Part shown: piece by piece, positions 2,690 through 39,846 of the stretch
How positions within the stretch are numbered: position 1 is the stretch's first letter
Layout: every line of letters starts with the position of its first letter
Assembly: GCF_030684315.1 (NCBI RefSeq)
Contig: NC_081369.1
Span: 32,479,152 to 32,543,151, forward strand
DNA: 64,000 bases
Origin: Stegostoma tigrinum
Lineage: Eukaryota
Reading direction: 5' to 3'
The notes under the pieces: model-generated
Database searches by the model: none
The model's input: only the letters and a program-made list of their open reading frames with translations
What the model was told of the DNA's origin: nothing
Program-made: the position numbers and the translations under genes

Positions 2690-2759
2690 ATGGAGACACA
2701 TGGAACAATAAATTGCTTTTTAGTAGAACTGATGATACTTTGTTCAATCTCTTTAGCAG
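2690..2759 (+). CDS. Exon 1: signal peptide/leader
   Basis: aaaATGG strong Kozak context; encodes METHGTINCFLVELMILCSISLA; ends G|GTGAGT (phase 1), in frame with the IgV exon. Confidence 0.75.
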
Positions 2760-5700: not shown

Positions 5701-8700
5701 TATATTGTAGAACTATTACAACTACAAATAGTTGAAATTTGGCCTGTCATGAGCATACAGCTCACATCAAACTCACCTACATCGAGAGCCCTGCAAAATA
5801 CTAACTTTAATGCAAATAATAACTTTAAAACAATTGTTTGAGGTACAGTGTCATTTTGCCGCTTTCAAGTGTAGTAAGTGACTTCCACCAAATAGGTAAC
5901 ACAGTGTAGAGCTGGATGAACACAGCAGGCCAGGCAGCACCAGAGGAGCAGGAAAGGTGTCGTTTCAGTTTGGGACCATTCTTCAGAAATGGGTTGAGTT
6001 TTCCAGCTCCTGGGTCCTGCAACTGCTAGCCATTTGTCCCTCCTTGGAATCCTGATGAATAAAATTCTTTATTCATTAATGGGATGAGGGCGTCGCTGGC
6101 CATGCAACATTTATTGTCCACCCCTAACTGCCCAGAGGGCAGTTCAGAGTCAACCGCGTTGTTGTGGGTCTGGAGTCACATGTAGGCCAGACCAGGTAAG
6201 GATGGCAGTTTCCTTCCCTAAAGGACATTACTGAACATTAATGATTCATTAAACCATGTTTAGACCCTACCTGTTTTTTAATGTGTGTAGTTTTTTTTTA
6301 AATGCAGTTTCTCTGGAGGTGGTGCTCATGCCGGCTATCAGCGCCACCGTTGGGGATGATGTGCTCCTTGGTTGTACGTTTTCACACACAGTTGCACTCG
6401 ATTTGCAAAACATTGTCATTGAGTGGAACCATAGAGTGCAAAATGAGGAAAAAGCTGTTTGCTTGTTTGACTTTGGAGAATATGAAAGTTATAGACCAGG
6501 ATCACTACTCTTCATAAATGAAATAAGCAAAGCAAATGCTTCTTTACTCCTAAAAAATGTTACGATCCACGATATTGGGTTATACTCCTGCACAGTGACA
6601 GTACTCTCCAATAAAGCAACGGGGAAAGTCTCTCTATCATTAACAGGTGAGTGAAAAATGACGTCTAATGTATAAACCTTTAGGAGCTCTGGAGGTTTTT
6701 CTTTCTTTCCTGTGTTCTCTGGAAATGTTAATGGTGCAGGTATGAATTCTGATTGATTGTGAGAAGTGTAAAGTGTTAGGGATCATACAATTATAAAGAT
6801 GTGAATTTGTCAATTGGATGCAGGTTGGTGTAAAGTGGCAAAAAAATTTGACCGCCTGATTATGCTAAAAGATACTGTATCTGATTTCTTTGAGACCCAT
6901 TCACAGTTTTTAATGTCTCAATGGGGGCATTAATGTGGACGTGAGGAAAAGGTACATTTCTGGATCCCAAAATATCCATCAGCAGGGGTTCTGTAAGGCC
7001 ATAAGAGATATGAACTGAAAATTAGGCCACTTAGCCCATTGAGTCTACACTGCCATTCAAACATGGCTAATGTGTTTCTCAATTCCATCCTTCTGCTTTC
7101 TCTCCATAAAGTTTGATCCCCTTACTAATCAAGAACCTATTAACCTCTGTCTAAAATACACTCAATGACTTGGTTGCCAGAGCCCTCTGTGGCAATGAGT
7201 GCCACAGATCAAACAGAAGAACTGTCTGAAACTGAAAGATCTTCAAAAACCAACCTATTGACAGAATAAGGAAAGCTAATTTTTAGTATTTCGGGGTGAA
7301 TAATTCTAAAGAAGTTAAAGGGTATGAATGAGAGATTTGACAGCATTAATTTAGTAGCAGTCGGCTCTGGGCTTGAATTTAACCTAACTTAGTTTGATAG
7401 GTTTAAAAATCACCTCTGCCTGACAGCTGTTGAAAGCCTTAAGGATTTTGAGTGCAGCCCATGACTCCTCATAATTCAAAGCTAATCAAGGAATCATGCT
7501 CAGAAGCTCCAAATAAAAGTGGCAAAAGAAGCAGAAATATCACATTTCAGTACCATGCTTCCTGAACTGTTGTGTTCCTACAAATTGCTCTTTTAATTAT
7601 GACAAACTGTTCTAAATTCTGCTGAGTTCAAATTGGAAAACGCTGACTTTAGCATAAACTGGTATGTCACAAGCCTATTTCTACTACTAAAGGGAAAAAT
7701 AACACTGTATTAATTTCAATATTAAACTAAGCACCGTGGGGGAGAAGGGTGGGTGCATGGAGGATTGCTCTCCTGTGATGAGATCCCTGTACAAGGTGAG
7801 ATGTGTTTTCCCCCCTCCCCTTCAGTGCGCAAGAAAAGAGAGCTACTCTCCAAAACCATTAATGAGTATTTTAGCCCTGTTGAAAGTTTTGTTCTGGTAC
7901 CACACAGTGTTGTTTTTATCTGAAGAGTGTATTTTATTCCCAAAGTAATGCTGCTTATAATCGTGTTAGTTGTTAGGGCTCCCAGCCTACTCGCAAGTGG
8001 GCACACATTAAATCTGGCTATAAAAATGGGCCTTTTCACTCACAGTGGTCACAAGAATGACTAGTAAGGCAAATGCCAAGATTGGAACTGGCACAGAAAG
8101 GTTTGCCCATCTGAGGCTATGGTTCAGACCAGATCATTTGTTGTGGCTTAGAACATTAGTTTGCATCTGACAGCACTGTGCCTCACCTGCTTTGTTTAAA
8201 ATAGAAAAATCGACCATAATGACAATCATATATATATAAATATTGTCAAAACCTACAGAAAAAAATTCACCGTTAATTGAAATGGAATATGCATGTCTTA
8301 TAAAGCTGCTGTTAAGTACCTTGGGATGTTTTTTTATATTCAGGGTGCTATACAAGTAGACCTTCTTAGTATGTATGACTAAGACCAAATACCCATTATC
8401 CTTTTTCCTGATTCCACCACTTGTTGGGTATTTGTTATCACTTCTGACCTTCCACTCTGATGCTGAATGTTTTGTACTCAAAAAGTTCTCAGTTTTATAG
8501 CTCTGCACCTGCATCTGAATCAATTTTGTGCATGACATGACATTGAACACTTCTTCTGTTGCCTCTGCCTCTGAGCCCATTTCCTCATAGGAGTCATTTC
8601 CCCAGCCCACAGATCCCTTCACCTACATTCGACACTCTCCTTCCACCTGGTTCGCTCCCTGTGCCCTTTGATCTGCACTCGAACTGTTCGTTGAGAACTA

Positions 8701-11700
8701 CAGACACAATATTGGTCATGTTAATTTTTCCACCCCCTATGCCACCACCCCTCCCAACCCTTGTCAATTTGAACCTATCTCCCTCTTAACAGTCTGCACT
8801 CTGTGCTGTCAGTACCAAACCTGACTTTGTAATTGAACCTACTAATGAATGGTGCTGTTGTTCTCTGGCAGACTGACCTTTGCATTGCAGAGGCTGAACA
8901 CCAGCTCTCTGACTCCTCCTCTTATCTCCCGCTCCCCCTAATTGTAGAATCACATTTAATGCTGAACAATATGTTCTGAGTTTTGCAAGCTCAAACTGGT
9001 CAAGAACAGTCAATATTTTACTGCCTAGCGTTATGGTAGGGACATAGGCCATATGCCCCACTAACTGGTGACTTACATTAAATACATCAGAGATAATGGG
9101 AACTGCAGATGCTGGAGATTCCAAGATAATAAAATGTGAGGCTGGATGAACACAGCAGGCCAAGCAGCATCTCAGGAGCACAAAAGCTGACGTTTCGGGC
9201 CTAGACCCTTCATCAGAGAGGGGGATGGGGGGAGGGAACTGGAATAAATATGGAGAGAGGGGGAGGCGGACCGAAGATGGAGAGTAAAGAAGATAGGTGG
9301 AGAGGGTGTAGGTGGGGAGGTAGGGAGGGGATAGGTCAGTCCAGGGAAGACGGACAGGTCAAGGAGGTGGGATGAGGTTAGTAGGTAGCTGGGGGTGCGG
9401 CTTGGGGTGGGAGGAAGGGATGGGTGAGAGGAAGAACCGGTTAGGGAGGCAGAGACAGGTTGGACTGGTTTTGGGATGCAGTGGGTAGAGGGGAAGAGCT
9501 GGGCTGTGCAGTGGGTAGAGGGGAATCTATTTGGCTGTTCAGAAGTTGAAAAAACATTTTTCTTTTTACTTCCTGATACGCTGTCTCTGAAAGTACATCA
9601 ATATACTTACTCTGCTTAATGCATCACTTTTGCTGAATGGTTTGAGACCTTTTGGCTTGGTACCATTAATGAAACTGACGGGAAAGGAAATTGCCATAGA
9701 AATTGATAGATCTTTATGAGTAAATTTCATCAAAGACAAAGGTGAATGCTGGTGTTTTGTTGCTGCCACAAAATACAGACCATTTTGTTTCTTCTTTGAG
9801 CCATAGAGTAGATATTTTAGTTAGCTATGTAGTGTTGTTACAATAGCGTAATATCTGTCAAACTACTCTGATATGACCTGCAAGTTGAAAGTTAAAAAAA
9901 ACAATGTGAGTTGGATTGATGTTGTTTACACTGAGCAAACTGAACAATTGGGGTGAAGCATTTACTATCCCTGATGGACAATTATAGATCCATCCATCAA
10001 TTAACTAATCAGTGCATTTTCATACCTAGTGGACATAAATCAACAGGTCAAAATATCCTGTTCTCCAGAGCACAATATTCCTGATTCTGTTACCATTTCC
10101 ATTACATTTGGGCCAGAACACAGCTTTAATACTGGAAGCTAAATTCCTGACATTTCACTATCCAAGTTCAAAACTATCGACTTAAGAATGCTCCTTGCTA
10201 AAACAAAAACAAATCATCAAAGCTGCTGGAAATTTGAAATAGAAATGGAGAATGTTGGTAAATTACAGTTTGACTGTATCTGTGAAGGAGGAAATGGAGT
10301 CAATTCCATCAGAAATGAACAAATTAAGCAAAATTTCTTCTTCACTTGTTAATTAATTACTGAAATACATAAAGAATGGATGTTAAACCCACAGTTTAAT
10401 TAAACGCAGAACTGATCCACAATCATCAGTATCTGCTGTAAGTGAAAAACAGATGTCTTAGGAGAATGTTGCGTGTATTTGTTAGAAGACCTGAGGCGCA
10501 AGCAATAAATTACAAAGACAGATCATACAAACTAGAATTGTATTAATATGGTTTGGGGTGATTTCTTCAAAAATTCAAGATGTCATGGGACACTCATATG
10601 ACCGCTGGGAAGAGGTCATTTCAACTGGGTGGGGCAGGGAGTATTGTCCAAAATCAGAGCTAGATTGTTCAGAAGACAAATTAGGAAATACCTCTTCATG
10701 CAAATTATGATAAAAATTTGTCACTCACTCAGTAATCGATGCTAAGTAAATTGTAAAATTTGAGTCTGAGGTAGCTAGACTTTTGTTGAGCAACAGTATT
10801 GAGCCTTTTAGGACCCAGAACAAATTTGGTGTTAATCACAGATCAACAACAAATTAATTAAATAGGAGAACAGGTTTGGGGGGCTACACTGGCTAACATA
10901 GTTATATTGTATTTTAAGGTAACATCAATAAAGAAAGCTAATAAAAATAACATATTTATCCTTATTCCTTGTATCCTTGTAGCACCTCCTTCAGTTTCAG
11001 TAAACACCGGAAATGTTGTAATTGAACCTGGTGAAGATAAAGCAATAATTTGTGAGATGAAAAGCTTTTATCCAGAAAATCACTCTATCTCTTGGTTAAG
11101 ACGTGGCTCACAAGACAGTGAAAACCAACTTGACATCACATCAAGAGCAGTTACAGGATCACTTCAACAAAATCAAGATGGGACATTTAATCTGCTTTCA
11201 TTCCTTATCATCAAAGGTGTTCAAATGGACGATGGAGCTTCTTATGTCTGCAAAGTTATTCATGAAACTTTAAAGACACCTGTGCAGAAAGTTGTTAGTT
11301 TGACAATCAAGGGTGAGTAGTTAAAGGAGAATGCTACCTGCTAAATGGCAAGAAACTCTTTTCTTAAAATTCTAATCTTACATGAATTCTATTTTTTTTA
11401 TTTTGAGTCTTGGCTGGCATTTGTATAACAGGGCCATAGAACAGATGGATCATTACAAATGTCAGACCCATTAGTTGGTTCCTACAAATATAAACATTGA
11501 ATCATGATCATGAGCTTTGCCAAATTTTAATTTTGGCACACATTTGTTACATCTTGAAGATTGTTTTCTGCTTACACGTTCCTTTGAATTATGGAAGATT
11601 TATGAATCTTGTGCTTTTCACATTTCAGAGGGATAGTAGGATAGAAATATGGTCAAATATTCACATGAACTTTTTAGAAAATTACAGGAAGACAAAAAGG

Positions 11701-14700
11701 TAGCCTTCCATTTTGGATAATAAATATAATTTATGTGGAATTTTTAAAGTGGATTCTTCTGTTCCTTGGTTAAAATATGGAGAGAAATATTGTTTTCTGT
11801 TGTAAGGAACAACATATCCAAATAGCAACACAAGGCTAAAACGAATAATTTATTTTTGATTGTTCAACTATAGGCATATACAAAATCTCGTTCATATGTT
11901 TAAGAATATTTGATGCAGATTACTTGTAGAGATTTATATAGAGCGCATGCACTCTCTGGAATAGCATTTGCTGTCCTAAGTGCAGCATTTAGGACCCAGA
12001 GATTTATTACACCCACAGCAGTGCATAGATGTGACCTTGCAATTTAAAAATAAACTCTACGACTCCAGTTAATGCTACAAATCAATCGGAAATTTCCCAG
12101 TCTCCCGTGCCAATCCTGCCCACCCAGTTAGTGACTTAATTTAGATGGACAATCGTTTATATTTCCCTCATATGCTTAGAATCTGTTTTGTTCGGATCCT
12201 AGAGTACATATCTGTCGCAGAGATCTAACTTTGTTCTGAATTTCTATGACCATTTCTACGATGCATCATCTTGGAGCAATTTTGATGTCAAAGAAATTTA
12301 ATTCCTTCCTCCCACTTTTTGAGGGTAGCAACTATTTTGTCAATACGCATTTGAAAACACAAATTATGTTAGGTGCTACACAGATACCAAATGCTCCTTA
12401 AAATCTTGAAGTAAGGAAAATGTTCCTCTCCATATTTTTACCAAGGAACAGAAGGATCCAACTCTCCACAAAACATATAAATATATTTACATCAGCTTCC
12501 TGACCATAACTTGGCTCCACCATGCCATTTATGGTTGAATAGCTTGTGAGTACTCTTTTTTTGCTTCCCTACAAGCCAATCATAGAAGGAATCGGACCCT
12601 AGAAATACGAGAACTCAGCTTCCATTTGACAACTTGACAGTATTAGCTATCTCAATTCTCAGTTTCACCATAAAAAGTTGGATGGACAACTGTTATTCTA
12701 TTTGCCCCAAGTCCCAATTACTTTTGTGTGTAGTTGAGGAGATTTATCAATAAGTCTGCATGAAATTGACTTACCCTCTATGGGTATCAGTGTAGAGAAC
12801 AGCATTACTCTTTGGAGCCTCTATTATTACAAAACCTGAATCAAGTTTGATCATGGATCTTACACACAAACCAAAGGATGCCCTCCTATTGTATGCCTAA
12901 GTGTTTAGATATAGAAACCCCACAGAATGGAAAGAGGACTTTTTGCCCAATGAGCCGGCACCAATATTCTGAAGAGTATCACACCCACACCCAGTGCCCA
13001 GCCTATTCCTAGACACTACGGGCAAATTTAGCATGGCCATCCACCTTACCCACAAATTTGTGGGAGGAAACTGGAGCAGCTAGCAGAAACCCACACAGAC
13101 ATAGGGAGAATGTGCAACACCACGCAGACATCCAAGGCTGGGATTGAACCTGGTTCTCTGCTGCTGTGAGGCAGCAGTGCCAACCACTGAGCTGCTGTCT
13201 TGCCCGACAAATATAAATGACAGTTTTGTTTTAGAATGGCCTCAGAGCTGTTCTTTTCCACCTCACTGTCATAGTACTACTCATCAACATGTGGCTTTTG
13301 TTTTGATCACCAAATTATTCTCCTAATATCATTAAAACAAAGGCTTTGTTGCAAGCCAGCCGTAGATCCTGAGGGTAAAAAGGTGAAAAATATTACTTTC
13401 TAAACAGTCTTGAGGAATAATATATCTTGTGTGCAGAGCAGGACTGAGTAAAATGTTGGATCAATAAGTACTTATTTTCATATTGACCTCACAATCTAAA
13501 TGGCTATGCAAATGCTGAACTGTCTAACAATTCACATTCCTAATTTTGCTGAAAGAATTCTATTGTGAAGTAATGGGTGCACTCTGAAATACATGTTAAA
13601 AATTTCAAGAATTACACACTATACTATAGATGGACTATAGAAAGTCTACTTGACATACAAACATTTAGGTTTGCTCCAGAGATTGTGAATAGAATAGGAG
13701 TTACTGCCTTATTTACCAATAAAGGATGTTTACAGTTAGTGATGTGTGATGCTGCTTAATGCTGTGCTGTGAGAAAAGTTCTGTTTTCTATGACGAGTGC
13801 AGTTTTGATTTAGCCAACATAGACAAACAGCAGTGAATAATTACTAACATGTATTTGGTCTTGCATTCCGCTAGGATACAACCCAAGAACAAGATCAGGA
13901 ATATTGCTCACTTTTCTTCTAACATGTGTGATCACCACAGCTGTTTGTTCTGGAGCATTCATTTTTTGCAGCTTTAAAAGACAAGGTAAAGCATCGGTCT
14001 TCCTGGAGCTTGGTTTTGGGAATGGCGTTGAATTTGGCAAGACTATATTTAATGCCCATGACTAGTTTGCCTAGAAGGGTGGTGTTGGTCCGTTTTGATC
14101 CTTACCAATCATGTGATAGTGATGCTCTCTCAGTGATGTAACATAGAAGATTTTACAATATTAATCCATTTTAAATAGAGTACTATTTCTTGCTATTCCT
14201 GGTACTGTAAATTGTAGTTATTTTTATCATCCAAATACACATTCCTGGTGAGGGTTTTTATGCTGACTTTCACTTTACAAATCCCAGTGGGATCAGGACT
14301 CCACATGGCAATGATTTTAAAATCATGTTCACATGCTCCTGTCTGGATCCTGACACTTCCAGGACAGCTTTCTGTTTTTAAGAGTGAGAGCAGAGAAGTG
14401 GGGAACTGAAGTCAGCTCCTCTCCAGATTACCAGCTCATTAAGCTCCTTTAGAGTCAGCGTGGGTAGCGCTGTCATTTTCAAAAGGGAGCCCAGTGAACT
14501 TGAACAATCTGGTGCATGTTAGTACCCAGCTGTCAGTTTACAGTGGGAGACCTGAAAATGCACTTACATTGACTGAAAAATGTTTGTGCAGGGCATTTGG
14601 GGCAGAGGTATGCTTATTAATTTTTATTTGGCTTGCGTTCCTTCCGTTAACACACACCAGCCCTTTAAGGAGCTTCCTACTGTTTAGGCAATGACAGATC

Positions 14701-17700
14701 TCAGCATGGCTGCCGGTACCGGGCTGGCTGTTCCCACCTAGTGGAGATATTGAGCACATCTCCTGCCCAATTAGGGCATTTGCATTTAAAAATAAGCTGA
14801 TAGGAGCAGGATTGCAGGAAAATATCCACATATAGGGTTCAAAATTCTGCTTTAAAGCCTGGGCCTTCGTTACTTCAACCCTGAATTTCAGAAGAGAACT
14901 CAATTTTTGGCAAATGGGATTGACAGTAGTCAACCATTTAGATTAGTTGAAGGTATAAGAGAAAGAGACCCAGTTATAAGTTATATTTGCAGGTTTCACA
15001 GTAGAAATTGAAATGGCATACAAAACTAGATCCTGTTCCACTTACGGAGAACACCTTTAATCAATCTGTAAGCTATCGTATGTAAATTTTTATAAACTTG
15101 CAATGTCCCAGATACCAGTTACTTATGATCCTTGTATGCTAGGCTTCATCTCAGGTAGTCAGTGTTCAATGCTCCATGAACTTCTGGCATATCTTTATGG
15201 TCAATGACCAGTCCACTGTACATGCCGTAAAGCAAGTTATGCTGCTGCTTTATAGAACTTTAGTTAGGCCACACTTGGGATGCTGCATATAGTTCTGGTC
15301 ATCACACTGCCAGAAGGATATGGATGCTTTGGAGAGGGTGCAGGAAAGCTTTACCAGGATGTTGCCTAGTATGGGGGAATTTTAGCTATAAAGAAAAGTT
15401 GGATAGACTGGGTTTTGTTTTCACTGGAATGCAGGAGGTTGAGGGGGCAACCTGATAAAAGTTTATAAGGTTGTGAATGGCATGGATAGAGTGGAAAGTA
15501 TGAGGCTTTTTCCCAGGGTAGAGGGGTCAATTACTAGGGAACAGAGGTTCAAGGTGCAGTTGGTAGGAGTGAGATGTGTGAGGCAAGTTTTCCGCAAAAA
15601 GGGTGGTGAGTGCCTGGAACATGCTGCCAGAGAAGGTGGTGGAAGCAGCCACAATAGCAGCATTCGAGAAACGCATGAATGGATATATGAATAGAAAGGA
15701 AATAGAGGGATATGGATCATATAAGCGAATACAGTTTTAGTATGTGAAGGCAAAATATGTCAGTGCAGGCTTGGAGGGCCATGAGTTCTGTTCCTGTGCG
15801 ATATTGTTCTTTGTTCTTCCGCGTTTGGAGAGCCCAGTTCCCAGTTAACAAAGCTGACTTTTTTGGTCTGACTTCCTATGCATTTCTGACCCTACCCCAT
15901 ACCAAATAAGGCAAGGACTTGAATTGGGTTATCTGATTCTAGTGTTAACCCCACCCTGGCTGTGCTGGGACCACCTTCATGGTGTCATATCCTGTTCTCC
16001 ATATGGTTTGTCTTCCAGAACTATGTTAACAGTGAGTGTGATTTTAGCTTCATAGAGGTCCAGAGCACAGAAAAAGGCACATTGGCCTATGGAGTCTGCA
16101 TTGGTCAAAAACAAGCACCTAACTTTTCCAATCCCATTTTCCAGCATTTGGCCTATAACCTACCATGCCTTGCATTGCAAGTGCACATTTAAACACTGCT
16201 CAAATAATATGAGGGTTTCTGCCTCTACCACCCTTACAGGCAATGAGTTCCAGATTCCCACCACTCTCTGAGTGGAAGAGAATTTCCTCACATTCCATCT
16301 AAACAGCGTGCCCCTTACCTTAAATCTATGCTGCAGTCATTGATTGCTCCACCAAGGATAAATGCTCCGTCCTGTCTACCCTGCCTATAACCCCATAGTT
16401 TTATTATCTCAATCGTGCCGCCCTCAGTCTCCTCTACTCCAATGTGTCCAACAAGGCATCTGTGGCAAATCTCCATTTCAGGGACATGGCCTGACATTTC
16501 CTTGTAGGCTGTGTATTAATTACAATGGCCTTGTTAGCCCAGAAACTCCAAGGCTCCCTGAATGGACCAGATTAACAGCTCCAATCAGGGAACTCAGATT
16601 CTGTGGGTCTACCTGGTTGACCTTGTTACAACACTACAATTACTATAATACAAATGTAACTAATACTTTAGTTTATTGCATTTGTTTGATACAAATAATC
16701 CATTGGATTACAAAGGATATCATCGAGCTTCTATCCAAAGATAATGGTGCATAAAAATAAATTTTAAATACTAGGAAAATTATCAGTGAAGCATATTACA
16801 AGATTGACAGTTTGTTTAAGAGAACAGCAGCTAGGTAATGCTATTCCTCTTCGTTTTTTTTTCAGCTCCAAAAGTGACAGACATCATTAAACCAAGCTGT
16901 TTCCGTGTAAATGATTCAGTCTCTCTGGCTTGTGCAGTTCTCTGGTTCAAACCAAAAGCTATCGAAGTCTCTTGGTACAGAGAGGAAGAGGATAAATTCC
17001 AGAAAGTTCTCATCTGTAAATGGAACAGCACCTCATCTTCTGTAAAACAATCGGAATACAGAAAAATAGTAGATTATTATCAGAGTGACCAAGACAAAAC
17101 AATATACTTCACAAGAGGAGACTATGACATTGCTATGTCATTAAAAAATCACAAAAGAAGTGGAGCATACAGTTTAGTCTCTCAGCTCACCTTCAGAAGT
17201 ACAGAAGCTACAACAAGAAAGCTAGTATATTCTTTTGAAGTCCAGCATGATGCTCTGAAACACGAAATTTCAAAAGCCATTGCTTTTGAAACTGAAGGTG
17301 AATTACATTTATTTTACTGCATAATAAAATGCCAGATAAATTAGAATTATATTAGTTTGTGCTAAAATGCCCATGGGATAACAAAATACAAATTCTAGTA
17401 GATAGCTGTGCGTATTGTACTCTTTAAATTAGTGGACCAGACTTAAGATATTTAGTTGAACTCCTATGTCTAATATTTTAATGATAATAGATCCATTTTG
17501 CACTTATGTAACACACTTAGCATGATAAAACTTTCTAAGCCCCTTCACAGGGGCATTAACAAAGCTTGATTCTAAACTAATGAGAGATATTAGGCCAAAT
17601 GACCAAAAACTTGAACACAGAGCTAAATGTTAAGGTCTGTAAAGTAGGAGAGAGAGAGAGAGAGCAAGCAGACAGGTTAAAGTAGGGAATTTAAGAGCTT

Positions 17701-29700: not shown

Positions 29701-32700
29701 TGCCAACTAGCATTTTTTGCCACTCCCTCAACACCACTCTGTCCGTTCCACCCCACCCCTGGAGATCAGGCCTTACAACGGGTGGTGAGGGAACCAACAA
29801 GAGGGAAAAATTGTACTTGACCTCATCCCCACTAATCTACCCCTAGCAGGTGTATCCACATCATTCTTTTGTTGACATAGGCCTGCCTTCACATTGAGGT
29901 TGCCTTCCATTTTGCTGTGGGGAATACCATGTATTGAATGGAATAGATTTCAAACTGATCTTCAACTCAAGACTGGACATCCATGAGTCACTGTGGGCCA
30001 TCAGCAGGAGCACAGCAGTATTCATCTACAGTCTACAACATCATCATCATCACACTGTACCATGATGGTAAAGCCAGGGATCGGTCCCAGGTCAATGAAG
30101 AGAATAGGAGGCTGTGCCATGAGCAGAAATGGGCTACCTAAAATTGAGGTGTTAACCAGTACAGCTATAGGAATGTAAATGTCATTAGTTGAAAAATATT
30201 CGTAACAACAAGGTGATAATTTTCTTTTCATTCACAGTTTAGAGGGAAACATGCTGGAGGATGAAGGAGCAGAGATCATTGCAAATGCACTCAGAAGTAA
30301 GACGTGCAGAATAGAAATTTTAAGGTAAATTGTCTTTGTCTGTTTCACATCTTTAAAATGGTGTAGTGGATAAAGTCAAATATCAATGCCAAATTTTTGC
30401 TCACTACTAAGATATAAACTAAACAGAATGTTTTTGACTGAAAACTGAGTTTTTAGGAGTTAAAATTCACAGCCGAAGAATGATAAAGTCAATTCTAAAC
30501 TCTTTCCTTGAACTGTCATATCAGTACAGTGTTGATTCCAGGTTCTTAATTTTGTACTTTATAGGAACCAAGACTTACTTTGCATGTCTTAAAGATTAAA
30601 ATGTTAAAAGCTATGATTAGTATAATTTTCTGTTGTTATTTTTGTTATATTAAGACTATTTGATCGAAATACTGTGGCTAAAGCCAGTATGGAAAATGGG
30701 AGGACTCATTGAAGTAAATTATGCAAAAAACACATATTAGCATAAAAGCAGTAATTAATTATTGGGTTTTCAGTGATTACTATATCAATTATTCAGTATT
30801 TTGCCATGCAAGCTTTTCCAAATGAGTTCTCTGATAGTACCATCAGCATTCACTGTTCAAGACAAAATCTTTAAACAAACTTTAAACAAATCAGTGAATG
30901 TGTAAGGACTCTGAAAAAAGGATAACAATCTTACTCATGATTCTGTGCAACTGAATTTTATTGCACGGTGGCTCAGTCGTTAGTACTGCAGCCTCACAGC
31001 ACCACACTTGATTCCAGCCTCGGGCGACTGTCTGTGTGGATTTTGCACGTTCTCCCCGTGTCTTTGTGGGTTTCCTCTAGGTGCTCCGGTTTCCTCCCAC
31101 AGCCCAAAGATGTGCAGGTTGGGTGGATTAGCCATGCTAAATTACCTGTAGTGTTCAGGTGTGTACAGTTTGGGGGCTTATAAGGATGGGCCTAGGTGGG
31201 ATGCTCTGAGGATTGGTGTGGACTTGTTCGGCCAAAGGGCCTGTTTCCGTGCAGTAGGGATTCTATAAATTCTATAAAAATTCTTCTATAACTAATAGAA
31301 CCTGATGACCTGTCAAGCTTATTTTTTTCAAATATATCACGTCATTTGTTTTAGCTGGTTGTAAATAATAATCTTGATCCTCAAAATTAAAATTGATTCA
31401 AAATGTTACTTGCACCATTGTGTTTGTGATTCTAATTAAAAGTAGTATTATAATTGAAGCACTAAATTATAAGCCCTGTTTGACACGTGAAAATACGTTT
31501 CCATCTTGTTCTATATAGTAAGAACCTACATTTCACATTGTAACTGCAATAAATAATTCCCCTGTATGCCGTGCACACTGGACTTTTCGGGGAATTTCCA
31601 AATCAGTTATAAGTAAATCAGATGCTTTCAGTGAAATGATGGACTACAGTGTATCACTATAGCTATATCACTAGCTTCGGGTCTAAGCAAATTATAGGAA
31701 TGATACAGTGTCTGAATATCCGGAACTTTCACAGGTTGAAGCACAACTCCATACAGGAAAAAGGAGCAGCCCAAATAGCTGATGCATTTAAAACAAACAG
31801 GAGTCTGAAAACATTGGGGTATGTAATCAACGTGGCAAAGTAGAATGTTTATCAAACTTGCAGGAGAATTTATACATAAAATTAACTGCTGTTAACATGT
31901 CTGATGATTTTACTTTGTTTATTTTAACAAAATCCTTCTGGTTTCACTAGATTAAGAGCAAACTCTGTCCGAGCTAAAGGTGCCCGTTCAATGGCTGAAG
32001 CTCTAGAGATCAACACAACATTGCGAGTTTTCGGGTATTGTTTATTTACCTCATATCGTTTGTGCACTACGTAGTGATATTACAAAATTTCAGGACAGCA
32101 CTGTTTGTAGTTGGTATTGTTAAGTCCATATTGGATCCTCATCATGACCAAGAGGAATTCTCAGAAGTGCTGACAAAATAACTTGTATGATTAATTATTT
32201 AATAAAACCAAGGTAAAATAAATTGTATCACCCAGCTATAACTAGAGGCACGACTACATTATTATATTATTAATAGTAGCATTGTCCTCTGGAAGTGTTC
32301 ATTTAAAAATAAGGCCTGAACCCGTTGGCAGATATGCTGTGTCATCACCATTTCTCAGTGCCTCAGAGGAAATTTTGATCTTTGCAAAGTGAAAAGTAGT
32401 CACTGCGAGAGCAGAGGTAGTAGGAACTGCAGATGCTGGAGAATCCGAGATAACAAGGTGTGGAGCTGGATGAACACAGCAGGCCAAGCAGTATCTTAGG
32501 AGTAGGAAAGCTGACGTTTCGGGCCTAGACCCTTCATCAGAAATGGGGGAGGGGAAGAAGGTTCTGAAATAAATAGGGAGAGACGGGGTGGCGGATCAAA
32601 GATGGATAGAGGAGAAGATAGGTGGAGGTGAGACAAACAAATTAAAGAGCCGGGGATGGAGCCAGTAAAGGTGAGTATAGGTGGGGAGGTAGGGAGGAGA

Positions 32701-35700: not shown

Positions 35701-38700
35701 GGTTCCATCATTACTAAGCGTGCATTTCTTCATCCATGAATCTAAATATTCACAGCCATTATTGCAAATGTGTCTAAAACTGAGACGGTTGTTAACTTCT
35801 TATCAATGGATGGCAATGTAGAAATCACTAACTCTAAAACTAGAGAGACTGGCTCAATTTCATTATGCCTCTTTCACCTGTGGGCTATGAACCAACGCTC
35901 CATAACCACCTGGAGTTAAATGACCTCAACTCGCATCTGTTGAAGATTGAACCTTGGAGTTCAATGATCTTCATTTTGTTCGACAGTGGGACTCTCCCTC
36001 TGGCCAAGCAAAATGAAGATCATAAATAGAAAGAAAAAAGCTCACAGTGTTAACAAATTGAGTTACTTTGGAACTAAGGGGGCTATTCTCATTATTGAAG
36101 GGTAATTAAATATATTTATTTGTCTTGTTTCAGTTTGCAGTTTAACAAGATCGGAGATGAAGGTGCAATGTATATGGCACAAGCAATGAAAAAAAATTGC
36201 AGCTTGGTTGAGTTAAGGTAATTGTTTAAATGTAAACTCACACCAGAACATTTTCTCCAATCCCAAACTCTCCCAGGTGTACTTATTTCCATTTGAGCTT
36301 TGAAGTTTGATTTCACAGACAGCTTATATTACCTGGTGGCTTGGCACTTGCCAGTCTGCTCATGTGCTGAATCTGGCTGATGTTTGCCCTGATCTTCAAT
36401 TACATTGGGCAGAGAACATAGAACACTGCAGCGCAGTACAGACCTTTTGGCTCTCGATGTTGCGCCAACCTGTGAAACCAAACTGAAGCCCATGTAACAT
36501 ACACTATTCCATTATCATCCATATGTTTATCCAATGACCATTTAAATGCCCTTAAACTTGGAGAGTCTACTACTGTTGCAGGCAGGACATTCCATGCCCT
36601 TACTACTTTCTGAGTAAATAACCTGCCTCTGACATCTTTGCTATATCTATCACCCCTCAATTTAAAGCTATGTCCCCTCACGCTAGCCACGTCCGTCTGA
36701 GGAAAAAGGCTCTCACTGTCCATCGTATCTAATCCTAAAAGCAATGGGAGTCTTGCCCATGAGCTGGAAATCTATGGGAGCCCCGTGTCACCTCTCTTGT
36801 TAAATATTGATCAGACACTGTATTGGGCAGTGAGGGCCTTTCCCAGAATCAATGATCCGAAGGGAAGAAGTACCACCCAAGAAGAGCTGCTTACCCACCA
36901 GAAGCCAGCAGCACTTAATTGTTAAAAATGGCACTGGGGGACCAGAGGCTGTTGCTTAGGCACCCACCTGAAGCCTAGGATCAGCTAAGCACAGGCCAAG
37001 GGAGTCATGGGCTGGATGGGAGGAGGGTTGGCAACTTAAATGGAACCCTGAGTCCTNNNNNNNNNNNNNNNNNNNNNNNNNNNNNNNNNNNNNNNNNNNN
37101 NNNNNNNNNNNNNNNNNNNNNNNNNNNNNNNNNNNNNNNNNNNNNNNNNNNNNNNNNNNNNNNNNNNNNNNNNNNNNNNNNNNNNNNNNNNNNNNNNNNA
37201 ATGAGACTGGGTGAATACCAATCGTGGTGCTATGAGAGGCTTAAGTAGTATTCATTTCCTAATTCAAAGCGCCAGTTAGTGGTGGGTCAGCAAATTTCTC
37301 CATGTGCTTTTCCACTGTAGAATTAACTGGGCTGGAGGCAAATCATTGTTTATTTTTAAGAGAATAGCTCCTTTAAAAGTGCTCTGCTATTTCCTTTTTC
37401 TTGTATGTCATCTATGATTTGTACCTTTTTATATTTAAGGATTTCAATTTATATGTTACTGTACTTTCTGGGTGGCTGATTAATGGAATGGATAATATTT
37501 GTTTGTAGACTCGGAGACAATGATATCACTGAAAAAGGGAGTGATTATTTTAGAAGTGCTTTAGAAGTCAATGACACACTTGAAGAATTATGGTAAGAAT
37601 TTTGTTTTATTGTTCATGAATTAAAATTGTTGTTTATTTAGAATTTTTTTTAGTTGATCACCACCATAGAAGAATGAAATTTTCTTCGAAGCTTGCATTT
37701 TAAAGCTGCTTAACCAGACTTGATGATGAATCAATGGTGGATAGTATTGAAACCAGTATAAATGAAAATGCAAAAGAAATACTGATAGTTTAGGCTAATA
37801 GGCAAAATTGTAGCTAATCGATTTCAGCATAGTCAAATATAAAAGGATGAAACAGAGCACTTTCCGACCTGTGAAAAGCTAAAGACTTTGGTCATCTGAA
37901 GAGACCTGGTGAAATGGGGTCCATGCACACAGAATATTAAGACTATTATGACTAAAAGGGTTAAATGAATGCTGGTCCTTATATCTGCTGGGACAGGATG
38001 CAAGTGGGTATAAGACAGCTATACAAATCCTGGCTAGGCTACACCTGCAGCACTGTGAACAGTTCTGAGCCGCACACGCTTGGGATATAAAGTATTGGCC
38101 TTGGAGATAATGCAGTGTAGCTTTACGGGAATAATTCCTTGACTCCAAAAGTAAAATTCTGATGAGATTACATAAACTGGTGTTGTATTCCCTGGAATTT
38201 GGAATATTTAAGGGTGATTTGGTTGAAGTTTTCAAGATATTAAGAACAGATAAGATCGATTGGGAGAGACTGTCTAGTTATGTTGTATTCATCGAGAACC
38301 ATTGTAAAAGAAAACCAGGTAAACATTTTTTTAAGAATGGAAGTAGGAAACACTTCTTCATGCAAAGAGTGGTAGATGTTTCAAACTCTCTTTCACAAAA
38401 AGTAATTGACACTGGATTAGTTGTTAATTTCAAAACTGAGTGATCAATTTTCATTAGCCAAAGACATCAAAGAATATGGAATACAGTTAGGTCACAGATC
38501 AGTGAGAAGTTCTGTGAATGATGGTATTGCTGCAGTGGACTAAATGTTTTACTTTTTCTGCTTTTCGGCGTGTCTATGCTGTGATCCCACTGGAAAAGGA
38601 GGCAGAAATAACAGCCTGATTTTAAAATTTGACGTTTGTTTTAGTAACAATGAAATTCACATCATTATAGGAAGAAATTAAAGTTTCTTATTTAAAATGC

Positions 38701-39846
38701 TACTGAATTTAAAGAGAAGTGTAAGATGCTAATAGGCATGTTTATTTTGTTTAAACTGGCAAATAACTTAATATTTACAATCAGTTCTATTTAAAAATAA
38801 ATAAAAGTTAATTTCAGTCACCACTGTGTCAAAGAAAATCAGACTACAGTAACCCAGTGTTCAACATAACTGCTCATGTTGGATATTGCAGTGATTGTAA
38901 TGAAGTCAGCCAGGCAGTTATCATCAAATATGAGTTCCCTGGTTGATCCTGTTAATCCGGTACAATCAGGGAGCCCTGGTTTACAAATCCCTGTAAGAGC
39001 TGGCTCTGAGGGAGCTGGATCAGTGTCAAAGACTCTCCATGTGTAAGTAAAGGGTAACTTGGAGACAGGACACCAGCCTCTATGGTTAGTTCAGGTTTCA
39101 ACAAGAGGACACATTTATCCTTTAATTTCAGAATCATCTCAAAACATGCAGTATTTAATCATTAAACTGACATATTTACATAATTTCCCATGACTACTTT
39201 TTGCAGTGAGTCAGAAGAAATTATGTATCACTTAGTGTTTGTTGTAACAATTTGAAAGATGTTATAGTTGTCACCTGGAATGGGAGTAGTTAAACAAATG
39301 CATGTTCTGGGCACATTTAAAGCACAGTTTTCTCTGGCTGCACTTAAGCCAGAAAGGAAATTCAGTGTGCATCATTTTATACATGAGATTTCCACCTTGA
39401 CTTTCCTTTCTGTATTGCATCCAAACAAGTACAAGTGTAAAATAAAAAAAAGAGGCACGTCATTCCTCCCTGTGGATGAAGAAAGAACTGCAGGATAAAA
39501 CAGCTTTTACAAAACGGTCAGAAATAGTAAAAACTGCTGATGCTGCAGTCAAAGATAACACAATGTGCAGCTGGAGGAATACAGCAGGCCAGGTAGCCCA
39601 TTTCTGAAGAGGGGTCTGGGTCCAAAATGTCAACTTGCCTACTCCTTTTTTACAAAATGGTCTTTCATTCCAATGTCCTGGTGTTTGACTCTTTTATTCA
39701 CTGAAGAACTGAAGCTTTTTGAGCCTTACCCTTAGAATCCTTTGATGTCTTTCTCGTTTAGGATTCTGGTGAATAGCATATCAAATGATGAAAAGGAAAG
39801 ACTGAAAAGTGCCAATTGCAAAAACCCAAATATTCGACTGAATTAA
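2690..39846 (+). CDS. Multi-exon gene model: B7-H6(NCR3LG1)-like IgV-IgC1-TM fused to cytoplasmic Ig-CARD-NACHT-LRR (membrane-anchored NLR); one in-frame stop at 25820-25822 (possible null allele, pseudogene or base error)
   Basis: Exons 2690-2759, 6308-6646, 10983-11312, 13875-13985, 16866-17297, 21868-22305, 24807-26535, 30238-30324, 31735-31818, 31951-32034, 36134-36217, 37509-37592, 39762-39846. All introns are GT-AG. The first six junctions are phase 1 and all LRR junctions are phase 2. Summed length is 3957 nt, in frame. Joining the Ig half to the NLR half is inferred from phase, not from a transcript. Confidence 0.75.
3273..3626. mobile_element. Short inverted pair of Penelope 3' ends
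   Basis: GATAGTAGGAACTGCAGATGCTGGAG... followed by its reverse complement; same terminus as other copies. Confidence 0.85.
3856..5446. mobile_element. Degenerate Penelope inverted pair (GIY-YIG region; minus copy to ~4920, then plus copy)
   Basis: ORF 4091..4486(-) IYCICCSQCGLLYFSETKQRLGDRF; ORF 4904..5401(+) HLPVANHFNSPSHS. Confidence 0.88.
6060..6240. repeat. Ancient SINE/LINE-tail repeat; inverted relative at ~28880-29075
   Basis: GAGTCAACC..GGAGTCACATGTAGGCCAGACCAGGTAAGGATGGCAGTTTCCTTCCCTAAAGGACATTA is similar to the reverse complement of ~28930-29050; family not assigned. Confidence 0.5.
6308..6646 (+). CDS. Exon 2: IgV domain, B7-H6-like
   Basis: Poly-T tract + GCAG acceptor, GTGAGT donor. 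V-set motifs LGCTF..IEW..RPG..NASLLLKNV..DIGLYSCTV..KATGKVSL resemble human NCR3LG1 (RPG..DASLRL..YRCEV..KAQGTVQL, from memory). Confidence 0.9.
9088..9525 (-). mobile_element. Penelope 3' fragment with consensus hammerhead motif
   Basis: Near-identical to 22468-22880. Confidence 0.88.
10983..11312 (+). CDS. Exon 3: IgC1 domain, B7-H6-like
   Basis: C1-set motifs EDKAIICEMKSFYPE..ISW..VTG..NQDGTFNLLS..YVCKVIHETLKTP; phase 1/1; TAG acceptor, GTGAGT donor. Confidence 0.9.
12915..13205 (-). mobile_element. Degenerate SINE, same family
   Basis: GGAGAATGTGCAA..GCTGTGAGGCAGCAGTGCCAACCACTGAGC similarity. Confidence 0.7.
13875..13985 (+). CDS. Exon 4: transmembrane segment
   Basis: Not in the ORF track. 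ttgcattccgctAG acceptor, AAG|GTAAAG donor, 111 nt, phase 1/1. Encodes GYNPRTRS-GILLTFLLTCVITTAVCSGAFIFCSF-KRQ (hydrophobic stretch followed by basic stop-transfer residues). Confidence 0.8.
15225..15818 (+). mobile_element. Degenerate CR1 3' fragment
   Basis: CTTTATAGAACTTTAGTTAGGCCACAC.. and GGAGGTTGAGGGGGCAACCTGATA homology to CR1 ORF2 end. Confidence 0.75.
16866..17297 (+). CDS. Exon 5: divergent Ig C1-like domain (predicted cytoplasmic)
   Basis: VSLACAVLWFKPKAIEVSWY...YSLVSQLTF...YSFEVQHDAL; F-strand Cys replaced by Phe; roughly 30-35 aa insertion; phase 1/1. Confidence 0.8.
18975..19860 (-). mobile_element. Degenerate CR1 fragments
   Basis: Minus ORFs MDVDRVFPLVGESMTRGYNLRV; QRNLGVLVHES..LLKLYKSL. 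Confidence 0.75.
20700..21019 (-). mobile_element. tRNA-derived SINE (V-SINE/HE1-like) with CR1-type tail
   Basis: Minus strand begins GGGCAGCACGGTGGCTCAGTGGTTAGCAC (A box) ... GGTTCAATTCC (B box); ends in (AATCT)n. Confidence 0.85.
21868..22305 (+). CDS. Exon 6: CARD-like death-fold domain
   Basis: IEEGRRAVVNYI..IQPLLNLLVNKKIISEDDHNAI..DKGRILLDMLSHRGQELCANFLNVLQD..YPGL is a typical CARD helix pattern; AACAG acceptor, GTAAGC donor, phase 1/1. Confidence 0.8.
22468..23782. mobile_element. Fold-back (inverted) Penelope 3' insertion, ~630-bp arms
   Basis: Arms ~22505-23152 and 23160-23782 around a 7-nt loop; mirror-image ORFs on both strands; possible AATCTGT TSD (22461-22467, 23788-23794). 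Confidence 0.92.
24807..26535 (+). CDS. Exon 7: FISNA-like + NACHT (NBD, HD1, WHD, HD2) + first LRRs; interrupted by TAG at 25820-25822
   Basis: Walker A GVAGIGKS, Walker B ILFLFDGLDE, sensor ILITSRP, LCYVPAFC, WHD IIKLAQLAWDG..IIFSEKDV and FFHLTHQEFFAALY. ORFs 24821..25822 and 25961..26542 are in the same frame, separated only by that stop. Confidence 0.92.
27649..28049. mobile_element. Second-family Penelope-like fold-back element with 13-bp TSD
   Basis: ~150-bp inverted arms (27649-27801, 27857-28010); GCATATGTACGTT duplicated at 27636-27648 and 28050-28062; hammerhead core present. Confidence 0.85.
27925..27984 (+). ncRNA. Minimal type-I hammerhead ribozyme motif (Penelope-associated)
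   Basis: GGAGGCTCA-CTGATGA-TGTTACC-TAGAAT-GGTGAC-GAAA-CG-TC-TGA...CCTTCC: conserved CUGAUGA/GAAA core, stem II, GUC cleavage triplet, flanking stem I. Confidence 0.7.
29459..29697. mobile_element. Short inverted Penelope 3'-end pair
   Basis: Same terminus on both strands; degenerate TSD CTC(T/C)TGCCA(G/A)CTAG. Confidence 0.8.
30238..30324 (+). CDS. Exon 8: LRR (87 nt)
   Basis: LEGNMLEDEGAEIIANALRSKTCRIEIL; phase 2/2; CACAG acceptor, GTAAAT donor. Confidence 0.88.
30963..31277 (+). mobile_element. tRNA-derived SINE, same family
   Basis: GCACGGTGGCTCAGTCGTTAGTACTGCAGCCTCACAGC... homologous to 20700-21019. Confidence 0.8.
31735..31818 (+). CDS. Exon 9: LRR (84 nt)
   Basis: LKHNSIQEKGAAQIADAFKTNRSLKTLG; phase 2/2. 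Confidence 0.9.
31951..32034 (+). CDS. Exon 10: LRR (84 nt)
   Basis: LRANSVRAKGARSMAEALEINTTLRVFG; phase 2/2. Confidence 0.9.
32415..34383. mobile_element. Inverted Penelope insertion (minus 3' end to ~33040, then plus RT-thumb + GIY-YIG copy), frameshifted
   Basis: FLDLSVSISGNHLETDIYFKPTDSHSYL and NVVYCIHCSRCGLLYSGETKRRLG; TSD TCACTGC(G/T)AGAGCAG at 32400-32414 and 34384-34398. Confidence 0.92.
34784..35555 (-). mobile_element. CR1 LINE 3' fragment (ORF2 C-terminus)
   Basis: KCEVMHFGRSN..RDLGVHV..LYKTLVRLHLEYCVQFWSPHYKK..LFSLERRRLRGDLIETYKI. Confidence 0.92.
36134..36217 (+). CDS. Exon 11: LRR (84 nt)
   Basis: LQFNKIGDEGAMYMAQAMKKNCSLVELR; phase 2/2. Confidence 0.9.
36410..36737 (-). mobile_element. 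CR1 3' end
   Basis: Homologous to 34784-35100. Confidence 0.85.
37057..37199. other. Assembly gap (143 N)
   Basis: Run of n inside the LRR exon 11-12 intron. Confidence 1.
37509..37592 (+). CDS. Exon 12: LRR (84 nt)
   Basis: LGDNDITEKGSDYFRSALEVNDTLEELW; phase 2/2. Confidence 0.9.
37830..38540 (+). mobile_element. Old CR1 fragment
   Basis: LYSLEF..KGDLVEVFKIL..KHFFMQRVV. Confidence 0.65.
39762..39846 (+). CDS. Exon 13: terminal coding exon (LRR cap)
   Basis: tctttctcgtttAG acceptor; (W)ILVNSISNDEKERLKSANCKNPNIRLN-stop, resembling the last repeat/cap of NOD1- or NLRC3-type LRRs. Confidence 0.75.

Follow-up and report, generated by a model that had tools for sequence, protein, structure and literature searches.

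A predicted transmembrane NLR with a B7-H6-like ectodomain in sharks and rays, and a premature stop codon in the Stegostoma tigrinum copy as assembled

In the textbook view, vertebrate NLRs are soluble sensors of the cytosol, and B7-H6 is a ligand for NKp30 that stressed cells display on their surface. The locus considered here, from Stegostoma tigrinum (NCBI RefSeq assembly GCF_030684315.1, contig NC_081369.1), raises the question of whether the two can be parts of one membrane protein. All coordinates refer to the window, that is, the whole 64-kb stretch of DNA that was analyzed, read on the + strand. Our analysis makes it rather probable that the locus belongs to an elasmobranch-wide gene for a type I membrane protein with the order SP-IgV-IgC1-TM-Ig-CARD-NACHT-LRR, and that the copy at hand, as assembled, is cut by a TAG codon; the intact protein may work through NLR-driven clustering. 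The gene appears to be real, conserved and surprising, and the function discussed below is a predicted one.

Exons and domains of the locus

Thirteen exons with AG/GT borders throughout were found on the + strand, from the leader to the terminal exon (2690-39846, Table 1). They sum to 3957 nt, which corresponds to 1318 codons followed by TAA, and the intron phases are 1 from the leader through the NACHT exon and 2 thereafter. The original prediction of 13 GT-AG exons splicing in frame holds for the borders, the phases and the domains, but not for the open frame, which is interrupted by a TAG at codon 912. Domain searches were made exon by exon, with natural full-length orthologues as proxies for the whole protein. 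The Pfam profiles bear out the domains that had been named (V-set, C1-set, CARD, NACHT, NOD2_WH and NLRC4_HD2), and orthologous proteins align to each of the leader, transmembrane, LRR and terminal exons that had been found by hand.

Table 1. Features of the locus, in coordinates of the 64-kb window.
Feature	Position	Strand	Remarks
Leader exon	2690..2759	+	Start ATG (A at -3, G at +4); 23 codons + 1 base; phase 1 end
IgV exon	6308..6646	+	Phase 1-1; Pfam V-set 1.7e-8
IgC1 exon	10983..11312	+	Phase 1-1; both Cys present; Pfam C1-set 6e-11
Connecting peptide and transmembrane exon	13875..13985	+	111 nt; phase 1-1; donor GTAAAG
Third Ig exon (C1-set-like)	16866..17297	+	Phase 1-1; half C1-set match, Pfam 6e-6
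CARD exon	21868..22305	+	Phase 1-1; Pfam CARD 7.6e-12
NACHT-WH-HD2-first LRR exon	24807..26535	+	Phase 1 in, 2 out; Pfam NACHT 1.5e-34, NOD2_WH, NLRC4_HD2
In-frame TAG	25820..25822	+	Codon 912 of 1318; between NACHT and winged-helix parts
LRR exon 1	30238..30324	+	87 nt; phase 2-2
LRR exon 2	31735..31818	+	84 nt; phase 2-2; missing from listed whale shark isoform
LRR exon 3	31951..32034	+	84 nt; phase 2-2
LRR exon 4	36134..36217	+	84 nt; phase 2-2
Assembly gap (Ns)	37057..37199	.	Within intron between LRR exons 4 and 5
LRR exon 5	37509..37592	+	84 nt; phase 2-2
Terminal exon	39762..39846	+	Last LRR; TAA 39844-39846

The leader exon encodes a hydrophobic core with small residues at -3/-1 (S-L-A), ends at a GTGAGT donor and agrees at 87% with residues 1-23 of the whale shark protein. 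In the IgV exon both canonical cysteines are present and the NAS and NVT sequons are conserved; its PDB matches are CD276 (2e-12), B7-H4 (2.5e-8) and B7-H6 (3.5e-8). For the IgC1 exon the top solved match is B7-H6 (1e-15), and for the ectodomain as a whole it is again B7-H6 (4zso, 2.5e-27), in agreement with the B7-H6-like character proposed originally. After the orthologues, the next database relatives are turtle NCR3LG1 proteins. Tetrapod B7-H6 (NCR3LG1, the NKp30 ligand) shares with the shark protein an ectodomain of IgV and IgC1-set domains and a single transmembrane segment, but the identity is only about 24-27%, a best-match relation. While human B7-H6 has a short signaling tail, the shark protein has Ig-CARD-NACHT-LRR in this position.

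The transmembrane exon was found by reading the frame from the acceptor at 13875, and contains a hydrophobic core (13901-13975) followed by KRQ. Orthologues align to it with a hydrophobic segment at the same place, which is the only one after C1 in all species examined. We have also considered candidates at 11515, 13247 and 14593, which are hydrophobic but lack usable splice sites.

The third Ig domain is of a different kind. The cysteine pairs are kept in V and C1, whereas in this domain the B-strand cysteine is present (LACAV, 16925-16939) and the F-strand cysteine is replaced (YSFEV, 17228-17242), the latter being lost in 16 of 16 orthologues as well as in the window copy. The domain has a loop insertion of ca 30 residues, and its PDB matches are light-chain constant domains (3e-4). 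An AF2 model has 8 strands at moderate confidence (pLDDT 63.8), and Foldseek returns antibody domains with a probability of 0.99. A search for homologous proteins with this exon by itself gave no match, probably owing to a length filter.

For the CARD, the caspase-1-type domain of ICEBERG (3.8e-7) is a nearer match than that of NOD1 (2e-4), with the RIPK2 CARD at 0.02. The NACHT exon carries Walker A (GVAGIGKS, 25073-25096), Walker B (LFLFDGLDE, 25289-25315), the sensor motif ILITSRP (25430-25450) and FFHLTHQEF (25985-26011). Its top solved match is NOD2 (5irm, 3.9e-53), and NLRP3 scores almost equally. The order CARD-NACHT-WH-HD2-LRR, the intact Walker motifs and the ribonuclease-inhibitor-type LRRs are all shared with NOD1, NOD2 and NLRC3, although the winged helix, HD2 and C-terminal LRRs lie downstream of the TAG in this copy. 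The LRRs of NOD2 are each encoded on an 84-nt exon, much as in the shark gene. What sets the protein apart from the NLRC-type NLRs is that it is predicted to span the membrane and has three Ig domains; in the window copy as in every orthologue, the NLR part comes after a predicted leader and a single hydrophobic span, an arrangement at odds with a soluble cytosolic protein.

It is important to point out that the assembly gap does not affect the reading frame, since it is intronic and the orthologue residues are continuous across it. LRR exons 4 and 5 on its two sides have their own splice sites, and the orthologues cross the intron without a lost residue (for example, P0160 aligns over 1226-1258 and then 1258-1286). 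The possibility of an LRR exon hidden among the Ns was rejected, as no additional repeat is seen at this point in the orthologues, and the gap is not expected to hold coding sequence. No tandem repeats were found between 22400 and 24000, and no Rfam families in the 5' part up to 20800. The downstream neighbor of the locus is a PLEKHF1-like gene.

Orthologues in sharks and rays, and the stop codon

Three annotation sources contain models of this gene, which together cover at least 17 elasmobranch species and have the same 13 exons and domain order. Among these are 14 RefSeq, UniProt and GenBank proteins of 1289-1346 residues with V-set, C1-set, CARD, NACHT and LRR; the author-submitted nurse shark protein QTT61908.1 (1318 residues), named 'natural killer cell cytotoxicity receptor 3 ligand (B7H6)'; and the models of a second pipeline for Chiloscyllium punctatum (GCC25762.1) and Scyliorhinus torazame (GCB79211.1). 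The species named in RefSeq include the whale shark, bamboo sharks, white shark, catsharks, horn shark, sevengill shark, sawshark, sawfish, devil ray, stingray and electric ray. When 17 orthologous proteins were compared with the window by tblastn, every exon was matched with identical borders, which shows that these borders are not due to chance. The identity is 80-93% for sharks and ca 67-74% for rays. Averaged between sharks and rays, it is 85% for the LRRs and 83% for NACHT, the most conserved parts of the protein, 75-76% for V and C1, and 64% for the third Ig.

A search with the NACHT domain against 1.84 billion cluster representatives gave a sole close relative, an electric ray protein with 76% identity and the order V-C1-TM-Ig-NACHT-LRR. 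All other matches, including those to other NLRs, have at most 39% identity, and the named ones beyond the orthologues are NLRP3-like, NLRC3-like and NLRP12-like proteins from many taxa. The orthologues are labeled 'NLRC3-like' or 'NOD1-like' in RefSeq, but an identity of this order does not bear out the orthology to NOD1 or NLRC3 that these names suggest. From the sequence comparisons, the gene is best described as one that has been kept in single copy throughout sharks and rays, with this locus as its orectolobiform orthologue. The original prediction knew of no described vertebrate protein with this architecture. In the part of the literature that was searched, no paper describing the fusion (B7H6 and NACHT together) was found; the architecture is, however, already present in databases, where it is obscured by the names 'NLRC3-like' and B7H6.

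We now turn our attention to the TAG. At codon 912 the 16 orthologues compared all have Glu. A mini-intron excising the stop was considered and rejected, as the GT...AG pairs around it span only 15-50 nt. As assembled, the copy can yield only a protein of 911 residues that ends before the winged helix, HD2 and the LRRs, or else an mRNA prone to NMD. If the base is correct, it would therefore be a null allele or a pseudogene of very recent origin. The alternative, that the TAG arose in assembly or base calling, or is carried by only one allele of a heterozygote, and that the gene still functions in the species, is a possibility to be taken seriously, albeit the less probable one. The TAG is the sole lesion, with the start codon, splice sites, Walker motifs and all other codons intact, and a single G-to-T change suffices if the ancestral codon was GAG. 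On the other hand, long-read assemblies seldom contain isolated substitution errors, an argument that applies if this assembly is of that type. In addition, no protein from the window is present in the database cluster containing the whale and nurse shark orthologues, where a gene annotated as coding would be expected. Private changes at columns that are otherwise invariant are also slightly in excess (14 in the window copy, 7 in nurse shark and ca 4 in whale shark), although the numbers are small and lineage rate alone could account for this. The copy in this genome is thus probably disabled.

Possible modes of action and the Ig-CARD junction

In the intact protein, the signal peptide and the B7-H6-like IgV-IgC1 part would lie outside the cell, followed by one transmembrane helix. 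The cytosolic part would consist of the disulfide-less C1-set-like Ig domain, the CARD, a NACHT NTPase with intact Walker motifs and ca 7 LRRs. A cytosolic location would be unusual for a C1-set Ig domain, which counts against this topology. The NLR would be anchored beneath the membrane, and nucleotide-driven oligomerization of NACHT would gather the CARDs for CARD-CARD signaling. Since every protomer would be tethered, the same step would cluster the B7-H6-like ectodomains on the outer face, and cytosolic sensing would in this way be coupled to recognition by an NKp30-type receptor.

Another option considered was signaling in the opposite direction, where an NKp30-like receptor or a microbial ligand acting on the ectodomain would trigger NACHT oligomerization and CARD signaling or death in the bearing cell. 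We regard this as rather unlikely. It would be consistent with the predicted single-pass topology, the B7-H6-like ectodomain and the intact-looking CARD and NACHT of the orthologues. A precedent exists in the sea cucumber AjNLRC4, an Ig-TM-NACHT protein placed at the cell membrane by experiment, whose extracellular Ig binds microbes and signals inward (PMC8699970) and which functions in Vibrio uptake (PMC8699970, PMC13133943). However, conservation is highest in the LRRs and NACHT, which fits a role in cytosolic sensing or autoinhibition; such a role would still gate activation, and ectodomain clustering would have to override it. Support for outside-in signaling is no stronger than for inside-out clustering of the ligand by the NLR or for simple tethering.

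In the last of these scenarios, the Ig-TM part would do no more than bring the NLR to the membrane, plasma or endosomal, at which invading microbes are encountered; a ligand function of the ectodomain would be absent. NOD1 and NOD2 depend on palmitoylation. A need for membrane association is also reported for NLRP3 (e.g. PMC11130711). Yet the shark-ray identity of V and C1, the two conserved V sequons and the conserved cysteine pairs are more than a tether needs, which makes this scenario improbable.

Finally, we have considered whether two neighboring genes were misjoined, one for a B7-H6-like V-C1-TM protein and one for a CARD-NACHT-LRR protein, the third Ig exon being a relic. The joining of TM, third Ig and CARD is supported by gene models from the three sources and by sequence conservation; gene models can join phase-compatible adjacent exons, later models may follow earlier proteins, and phase 1-1 exons fit in frame by construction. 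If the donor of the transmembrane exon is left unused, a stop follows after 29 further codons, so that a short form is conceivable. Against this stand several observations. As stated originally, the CARD exon opens in phase 1 without an ATG before the CARD, and the preceding Ig exon closes in phase 1; the Gly encoded by the split codon at their junction (G|GT) does not vary among the orthologues. The third Ig exon is open over 144 codons, has an invariant Cys and Trp, and is always located between TM and CARD, and isoforms that skip the CARD exon still splice it to NACHT. In none of the species is there an orthologue model that starts at the CARD or stops after the transmembrane exon. Together with the agreement of the three sources over at least 17 species and the shark-ray conservation of the third Ig, this makes the misjoining of two genes very improbable.

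Other membrane NLRs and significance

The single gene favored here can be compared with other NLRs associated with membranes. AjNLRC4 has an extracellular Ig, a membrane span and an intracellular NACHT, as in the shark protein, but belongs to an invertebrate, has two transmembrane segments and neither CARD nor LRR, and signals via actin; nothing points to a shared ancestry of the two. The anthozoan NLRs are predicted to be membrane-bound through 3-5 N-terminal transmembrane segments (PMC5094078), but these cnidarian proteins are multi-pass and lack an Ig ectodomain. Closer in design are more than 15 butyrophilin-like models in bichir and reedfish, with V-set, Ig-C, one transmembrane segment, NACHT and LRR. 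These polypterid proteins form a multigene family, have a butyrophilin-type C2 domain and no third Ig, and their NACHT is only ca 35% identical to that of the shark, and they are therefore most likely an independent fusion. The parallel family in bichir suggests that the design is not a one-off.

One can tentatively speculate about a vertebrate class of type I transmembrane NLRs with B7/butyrophilin ectodomains that has arisen at least twice, in elasmobranchs and in polypterids. The NKp30 ligand of sharks would then be the outer face of a cytosolic danger sensor. When infection or stress is sensed, oligomerization of the NLR would cluster this NK/T-cell ligand at the surface and so produce a hard-wired 'induced-self' signal, with the CARDs signaling within the cell.

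A conserved fusion of this kind, in a gene retained since the separation of sharks and rays, would directly link cell-intrinsic sensing to recognition by killer lymphocytes, and a disabled copy would amount to a natural knockout. It provides a system in which to study two problems: how NLR oligomerization can be coupled across a membrane, and what role the NKp30/B7-H6 pair played in early jawed-vertebrate immunity.

Gene model and the interrupted reading frame

We rebuilt the model of the shark NLR gene from the raw sequence of the window, and it consists of 13 exons on the plus strand, all with AG/GT borders (see the table below). All introns up to the NACHT exon are in phase 1 and all later ones in phase 2, and the summed exons amount to 3957 nt, that is, 1318 codons followed by TAA. 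Together with the Pfam domains, this model confirms to the base the exon anatomy of the original prediction, which had also stated, correctly, that the CARD exon has no start codon of its own.

Exons and other features of the NLR gene in the window
Feature	Position	Strand	Remarks
Leader exon	2690-2759	+	Good start context, hydrophobic core, small residues at -3/-1
IgV exon	6308-6646	+	Pfam V-set
IgC1 exon	10983-11312	+	Pfam C1-set
TM exon	13875-13985	+	25-residue hydrophobic core, then KRQ
Ig3 exon (third Ig exon)	16866-17297	+	Pfam half C1-set match
CARD exon	21868-22305	+	Pfam CARD; no Met before CARD
NACHT exon	24807-26535	+	Pfam NACHT, NOD2_WH, NLRC4_HD2
Walker A	25073-25096		Intact
Walker B	25289-25315		Intact
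LRR exon 1	30238-30324	+	
LRR exon 2	31735-31818	+	
LRR exon 3	31951-32034	+	
LRR exon 4	36134-36217	+	
N stretch	37057-37199		Intron between LRR exons 4 and 5
LRR exon 5	37509-37592	+	
Terminal exon	39762-39846	+	

The LRR exons that flank the assembly gap have their own splice sites (phase 2-2), and the orthologous proteins cross from one to the other with zero residues missing. The reading frame is therefore independent of the gap, in which no further exon is to be expected.

The original prediction has the exons splicing in frame, but the NACHT exon is interrupted by an in-frame TAG at 25820-25822 (codon 912, at the junction of NACHT and winged helix), and the window copy is thus interrupted. 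No credible intron that excises this TAG was found. It is the sole lesion, the splice sites, the start codon, both Walker motifs and every other codon being intact, and its position is occupied by Glu in 16 of 16 orthologues (elasmobranch database proteins). The window copy shares 92.6% identity with whale shark, 91.9% with nurse shark and 86.9% with bamboo shark, which places it in a third orectolobiform lineage. Its divergence from the bamboo shark outgroup is about 2 points above that of whale or nurse shark, and at columns that are otherwise invariant it shows 14 changes of its own, compared to 7 in nurse shark and about 4 in whale shark. This excess hints at relaxed constraint, with the reservation that the numbers are small and that lineage rates differ. 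A protein from the window is absent from the database cluster that contains its two closest orthologues. We consider it probable that the sequenced haplotype does carry the TAG; an error, or a TAG on one allele of a gene that works, is possible and distinctly the weaker explanation.

The surroundings were also inspected. Just upstream of the leader exon, 1-2000 is G-rich (GC 0.57, GC skew 0.48) and may represent a promoter region or a repeat; a search for tandem repeats was negative there. The CARD-NACHT intron contains a near-perfect 1.28-kb palindrome (22505-23782), in which the two arms, at 22680-23152 and 23160-23632, flank a 7-nt spacer with 97% complementarity and both bear ORFs of a family with many copies across the window. 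These are possibly Penelope-like elements, as the copy at 4091-4486 has a GIY-YIG-like start. More fragments of this family (4091-5401, 32496-34393, 52040-52868), with the motifs HLPVANHF..SHS..DMSI.GLLQ and LGTLQPNG.NVDFTSFKISP, occur on either strand, within introns as well as downstream of the gene. Two related ORFs, at 34869-35570 (minus strand) and 43062-43688 (plus strand), are like the C-terminal part of LINE reverse transcriptases, and Pfam returned no family for the latter. Downstream of the NLR gene, 61270-62091 (plus strand) holds a PLEKHF1-like ORF of 273 aa with PH and FYVE domains, which is probably why the basking shark orthologue carries the RefSeq label 'pleckstrin homology domain-containing family F member 1'.

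Orthologues and the single-gene question

When the first part of the NACHT exon was used as the HMMER query against 1.84 billion cluster representatives, a single close relative was found, an electric ray protein with 76% identity, the order SP-V-C1-TM-Ig-NACHT-LRR and NACHT from residue 426; all remaining NACHT hits were at most 39% identical. The N-terminal 500 residues of this protein retrieved in turn 14 elasmobranch proteins of 1168-1346 aa (from Narcine, Pristis, Mobula, Hemitrygon, Pristiophorus, Heptranchias, Heterodontus, Carcharodon, Chiloscyllium, Scyliorhinus, Rhincodon and Mustelus), followed by turtle NCR3LG1, which is B7-H6. All 14 have V-set, C1-set, NACHT and LRR, and all except two CARD-skipping isoforms have the CARD as well. 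The 90% clusters contribute Cetorhinus, Scyliorhinus torazame and, within the bamboo shark cluster, one more species, together with two models (GCC25762.1 and GCB79211.1) that another annotation pipeline produced. Their most telling member is QTT61908.1, which its authors submitted from nurse shark under the name 'natural killer cell cytotoxicity receptor 3 ligand (B7H6)'; it is exactly 1318 aa long and has V-set, C1-set, CARD, NACHT, HD2 and LRR. The architecture, which the original prediction did not know from any described vertebrate protein, is thus already in the databases, under uninformative names and one expert name.

In tblastn of all orthologous proteins against the window, 13 of the 13 exons were matched with the same borders. 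The junctions are continuous in a 12-species alignment, in which the Gly from the codon split between Ig3 and CARD is invariant. The sole exception is the Mustelus model, in which part of Ig3 is duplicated where TM and Ig3 meet, probably through a prediction error. No model among those compared has its start at the CARD or its end after the TM exon. Among the annotated isoforms, those of electric ray and sawshark lack the CARD exon, one of white shark lacks an LRR exon and one of bamboo shark has its V exon replaced; TM-exon skipping is found in none of them. The RefSeq Gnomon pipeline is not known to add extra isoforms unless transcripts support them, which would imply RNA reads across both Ig3-NACHT and Ig3-CARD. 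That two genes have been wrongly joined is, we judge, very improbable. We have high confidence that the architecture is real and conserved: the claimed SP-IgV-IgC1-TM-Ig-CARD-NACHT-LRR order stands in the elasmobranch models, and what fails is the open frame in the window copy.

Two further features of the window concern possible shorter products. If the TM donor is unused, the frame runs for 29 more codons (13986-14072, GKASVFLELGFGNGVEFGKTIFNAHD) to a stop, and a short V-C1-TM isoform lacking the NLR could result. An ATG in frame with the Ig3 exon lies within its polypyrimidine tract (16838-16865, MLFLFVFFS-); it is probably there by chance, but an Ig3-CARD-NACHT-LRR product could begin with it if the transcript were internal or unspliced.

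Topology and relations of the domains

In every orthologue, C1 is followed by a single hydrophobic span; a hydrophobic leader at the N-terminus is present in most. The Cys pairs of V and C1 are kept, with the single exception of the C1 B-strand Cys of Narcine (Ser), as are two sequons in V. Ig3 retains its B-strand Cys and Trp residues, while the F-strand Cys position is Ser, Tyr or Phe in 16 orthologues and the window copy, as expected for an Ig fold in the reducing cytosol. Its AF2 model is an eight-strand sandwich of moderate pLDDT (63.8) with a disordered loop at 57-83; Foldseek matches it to antibody domains (probability 0.99), and its sequence matches are light-chain constant domains.

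The whole ectodomain is closest to human B7-H6 (2.5e-27), then to CD276 (1.4e-20) and TAPBPR (8e-17), and B7-H6 is also the top match of the C1 exon alone. For the CARD, the closest match is ICEBERG (3.8e-7), whose CARD is of the caspase-1 type, followed by NOD1 (2e-4) and RIPK2 (0.02). The NACHT is about equidistant from NOD2 (3.9e-53) and NLRP3 (3e-49), its named neighbours in the database, at 36-39% identity, being fish, amphibian and shark proteins of the NLRP3-, NLRC3- and NLRP12-like types. LRR exons of 84 nt with a single repeat each follow the NOD2/NLRC pattern. Mean pairwise identity among sharks and rays is 85% for LRR, 83% for NACHT, 76% for V, 75% for C1, 70% for CARD, 64% for Ig3 and 59% for TM.

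Other transmembrane NLRs and a possible mechanism

In the literature searched, no paper was found that treats B7H6 and NACHT together, and a printed description in the shark NKp30/B7H6 papers is possible. The whale shark genome paper lists 43 NLRs, with Ig or TM domains unmentioned. Outside vertebrates, transmembrane NLRs are represented by sea cucumber AjNLRC4, an Ig-TM-NACHT receptor with shown membrane location (PMC8699970, PMC13133943), and by anthozoan NLRs with 3-5 TM segments (PMC5094078).

Among the weaker NACHT hits with long N-terminal extensions, we met a family represented by over 15 RefSeq models (database proteins P0095 and P0203-P0218) from the bichir Polypterus senegalus and the reedfish Erpetoichthys calabaricus. 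In these, a butyrophilin-like V-set and C2-set_3 precede one hydrophobic span at around residue 240, which is followed by NACHT and LRR. With a NACHT about 35% identical to that of the shark gene, the family is apparently a second, independent vertebrate Ig-TM-NLR design. Another unusual NLR N-terminus in bichir is that of P0120 and its cluster (Polypterus senegalus, several isoform models), where RING-B-box-coiled-coil (TRIM) is fused to NACHT-LRR.

In an NLR disc the N-terminal effector domains are collected on one face. With each CARD linked via Ig3 to a TM helix, the oligomer would sit beneath the membrane and draw the B7-H6-like ectodomains into a cluster. Cytosolic sensing could then lead to ligand clustering for an NKp30-type receptor together with CARD signalling (inside-out). 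The opposite coupling, in which ectodomain engagement or clustering would drive NACHT oligomerisation and CARD signalling, is the one put forward originally, and plain tethering would be a third mode. The very high conservation of LRR and NACHT speaks for the importance of cytosolic sensing or autoinhibition, and the conservation of the ectodomain for a genuine role as a ligand. Judging from these sequences, we favour a coupled design of ectodomain and NLR, which may operate in either direction.
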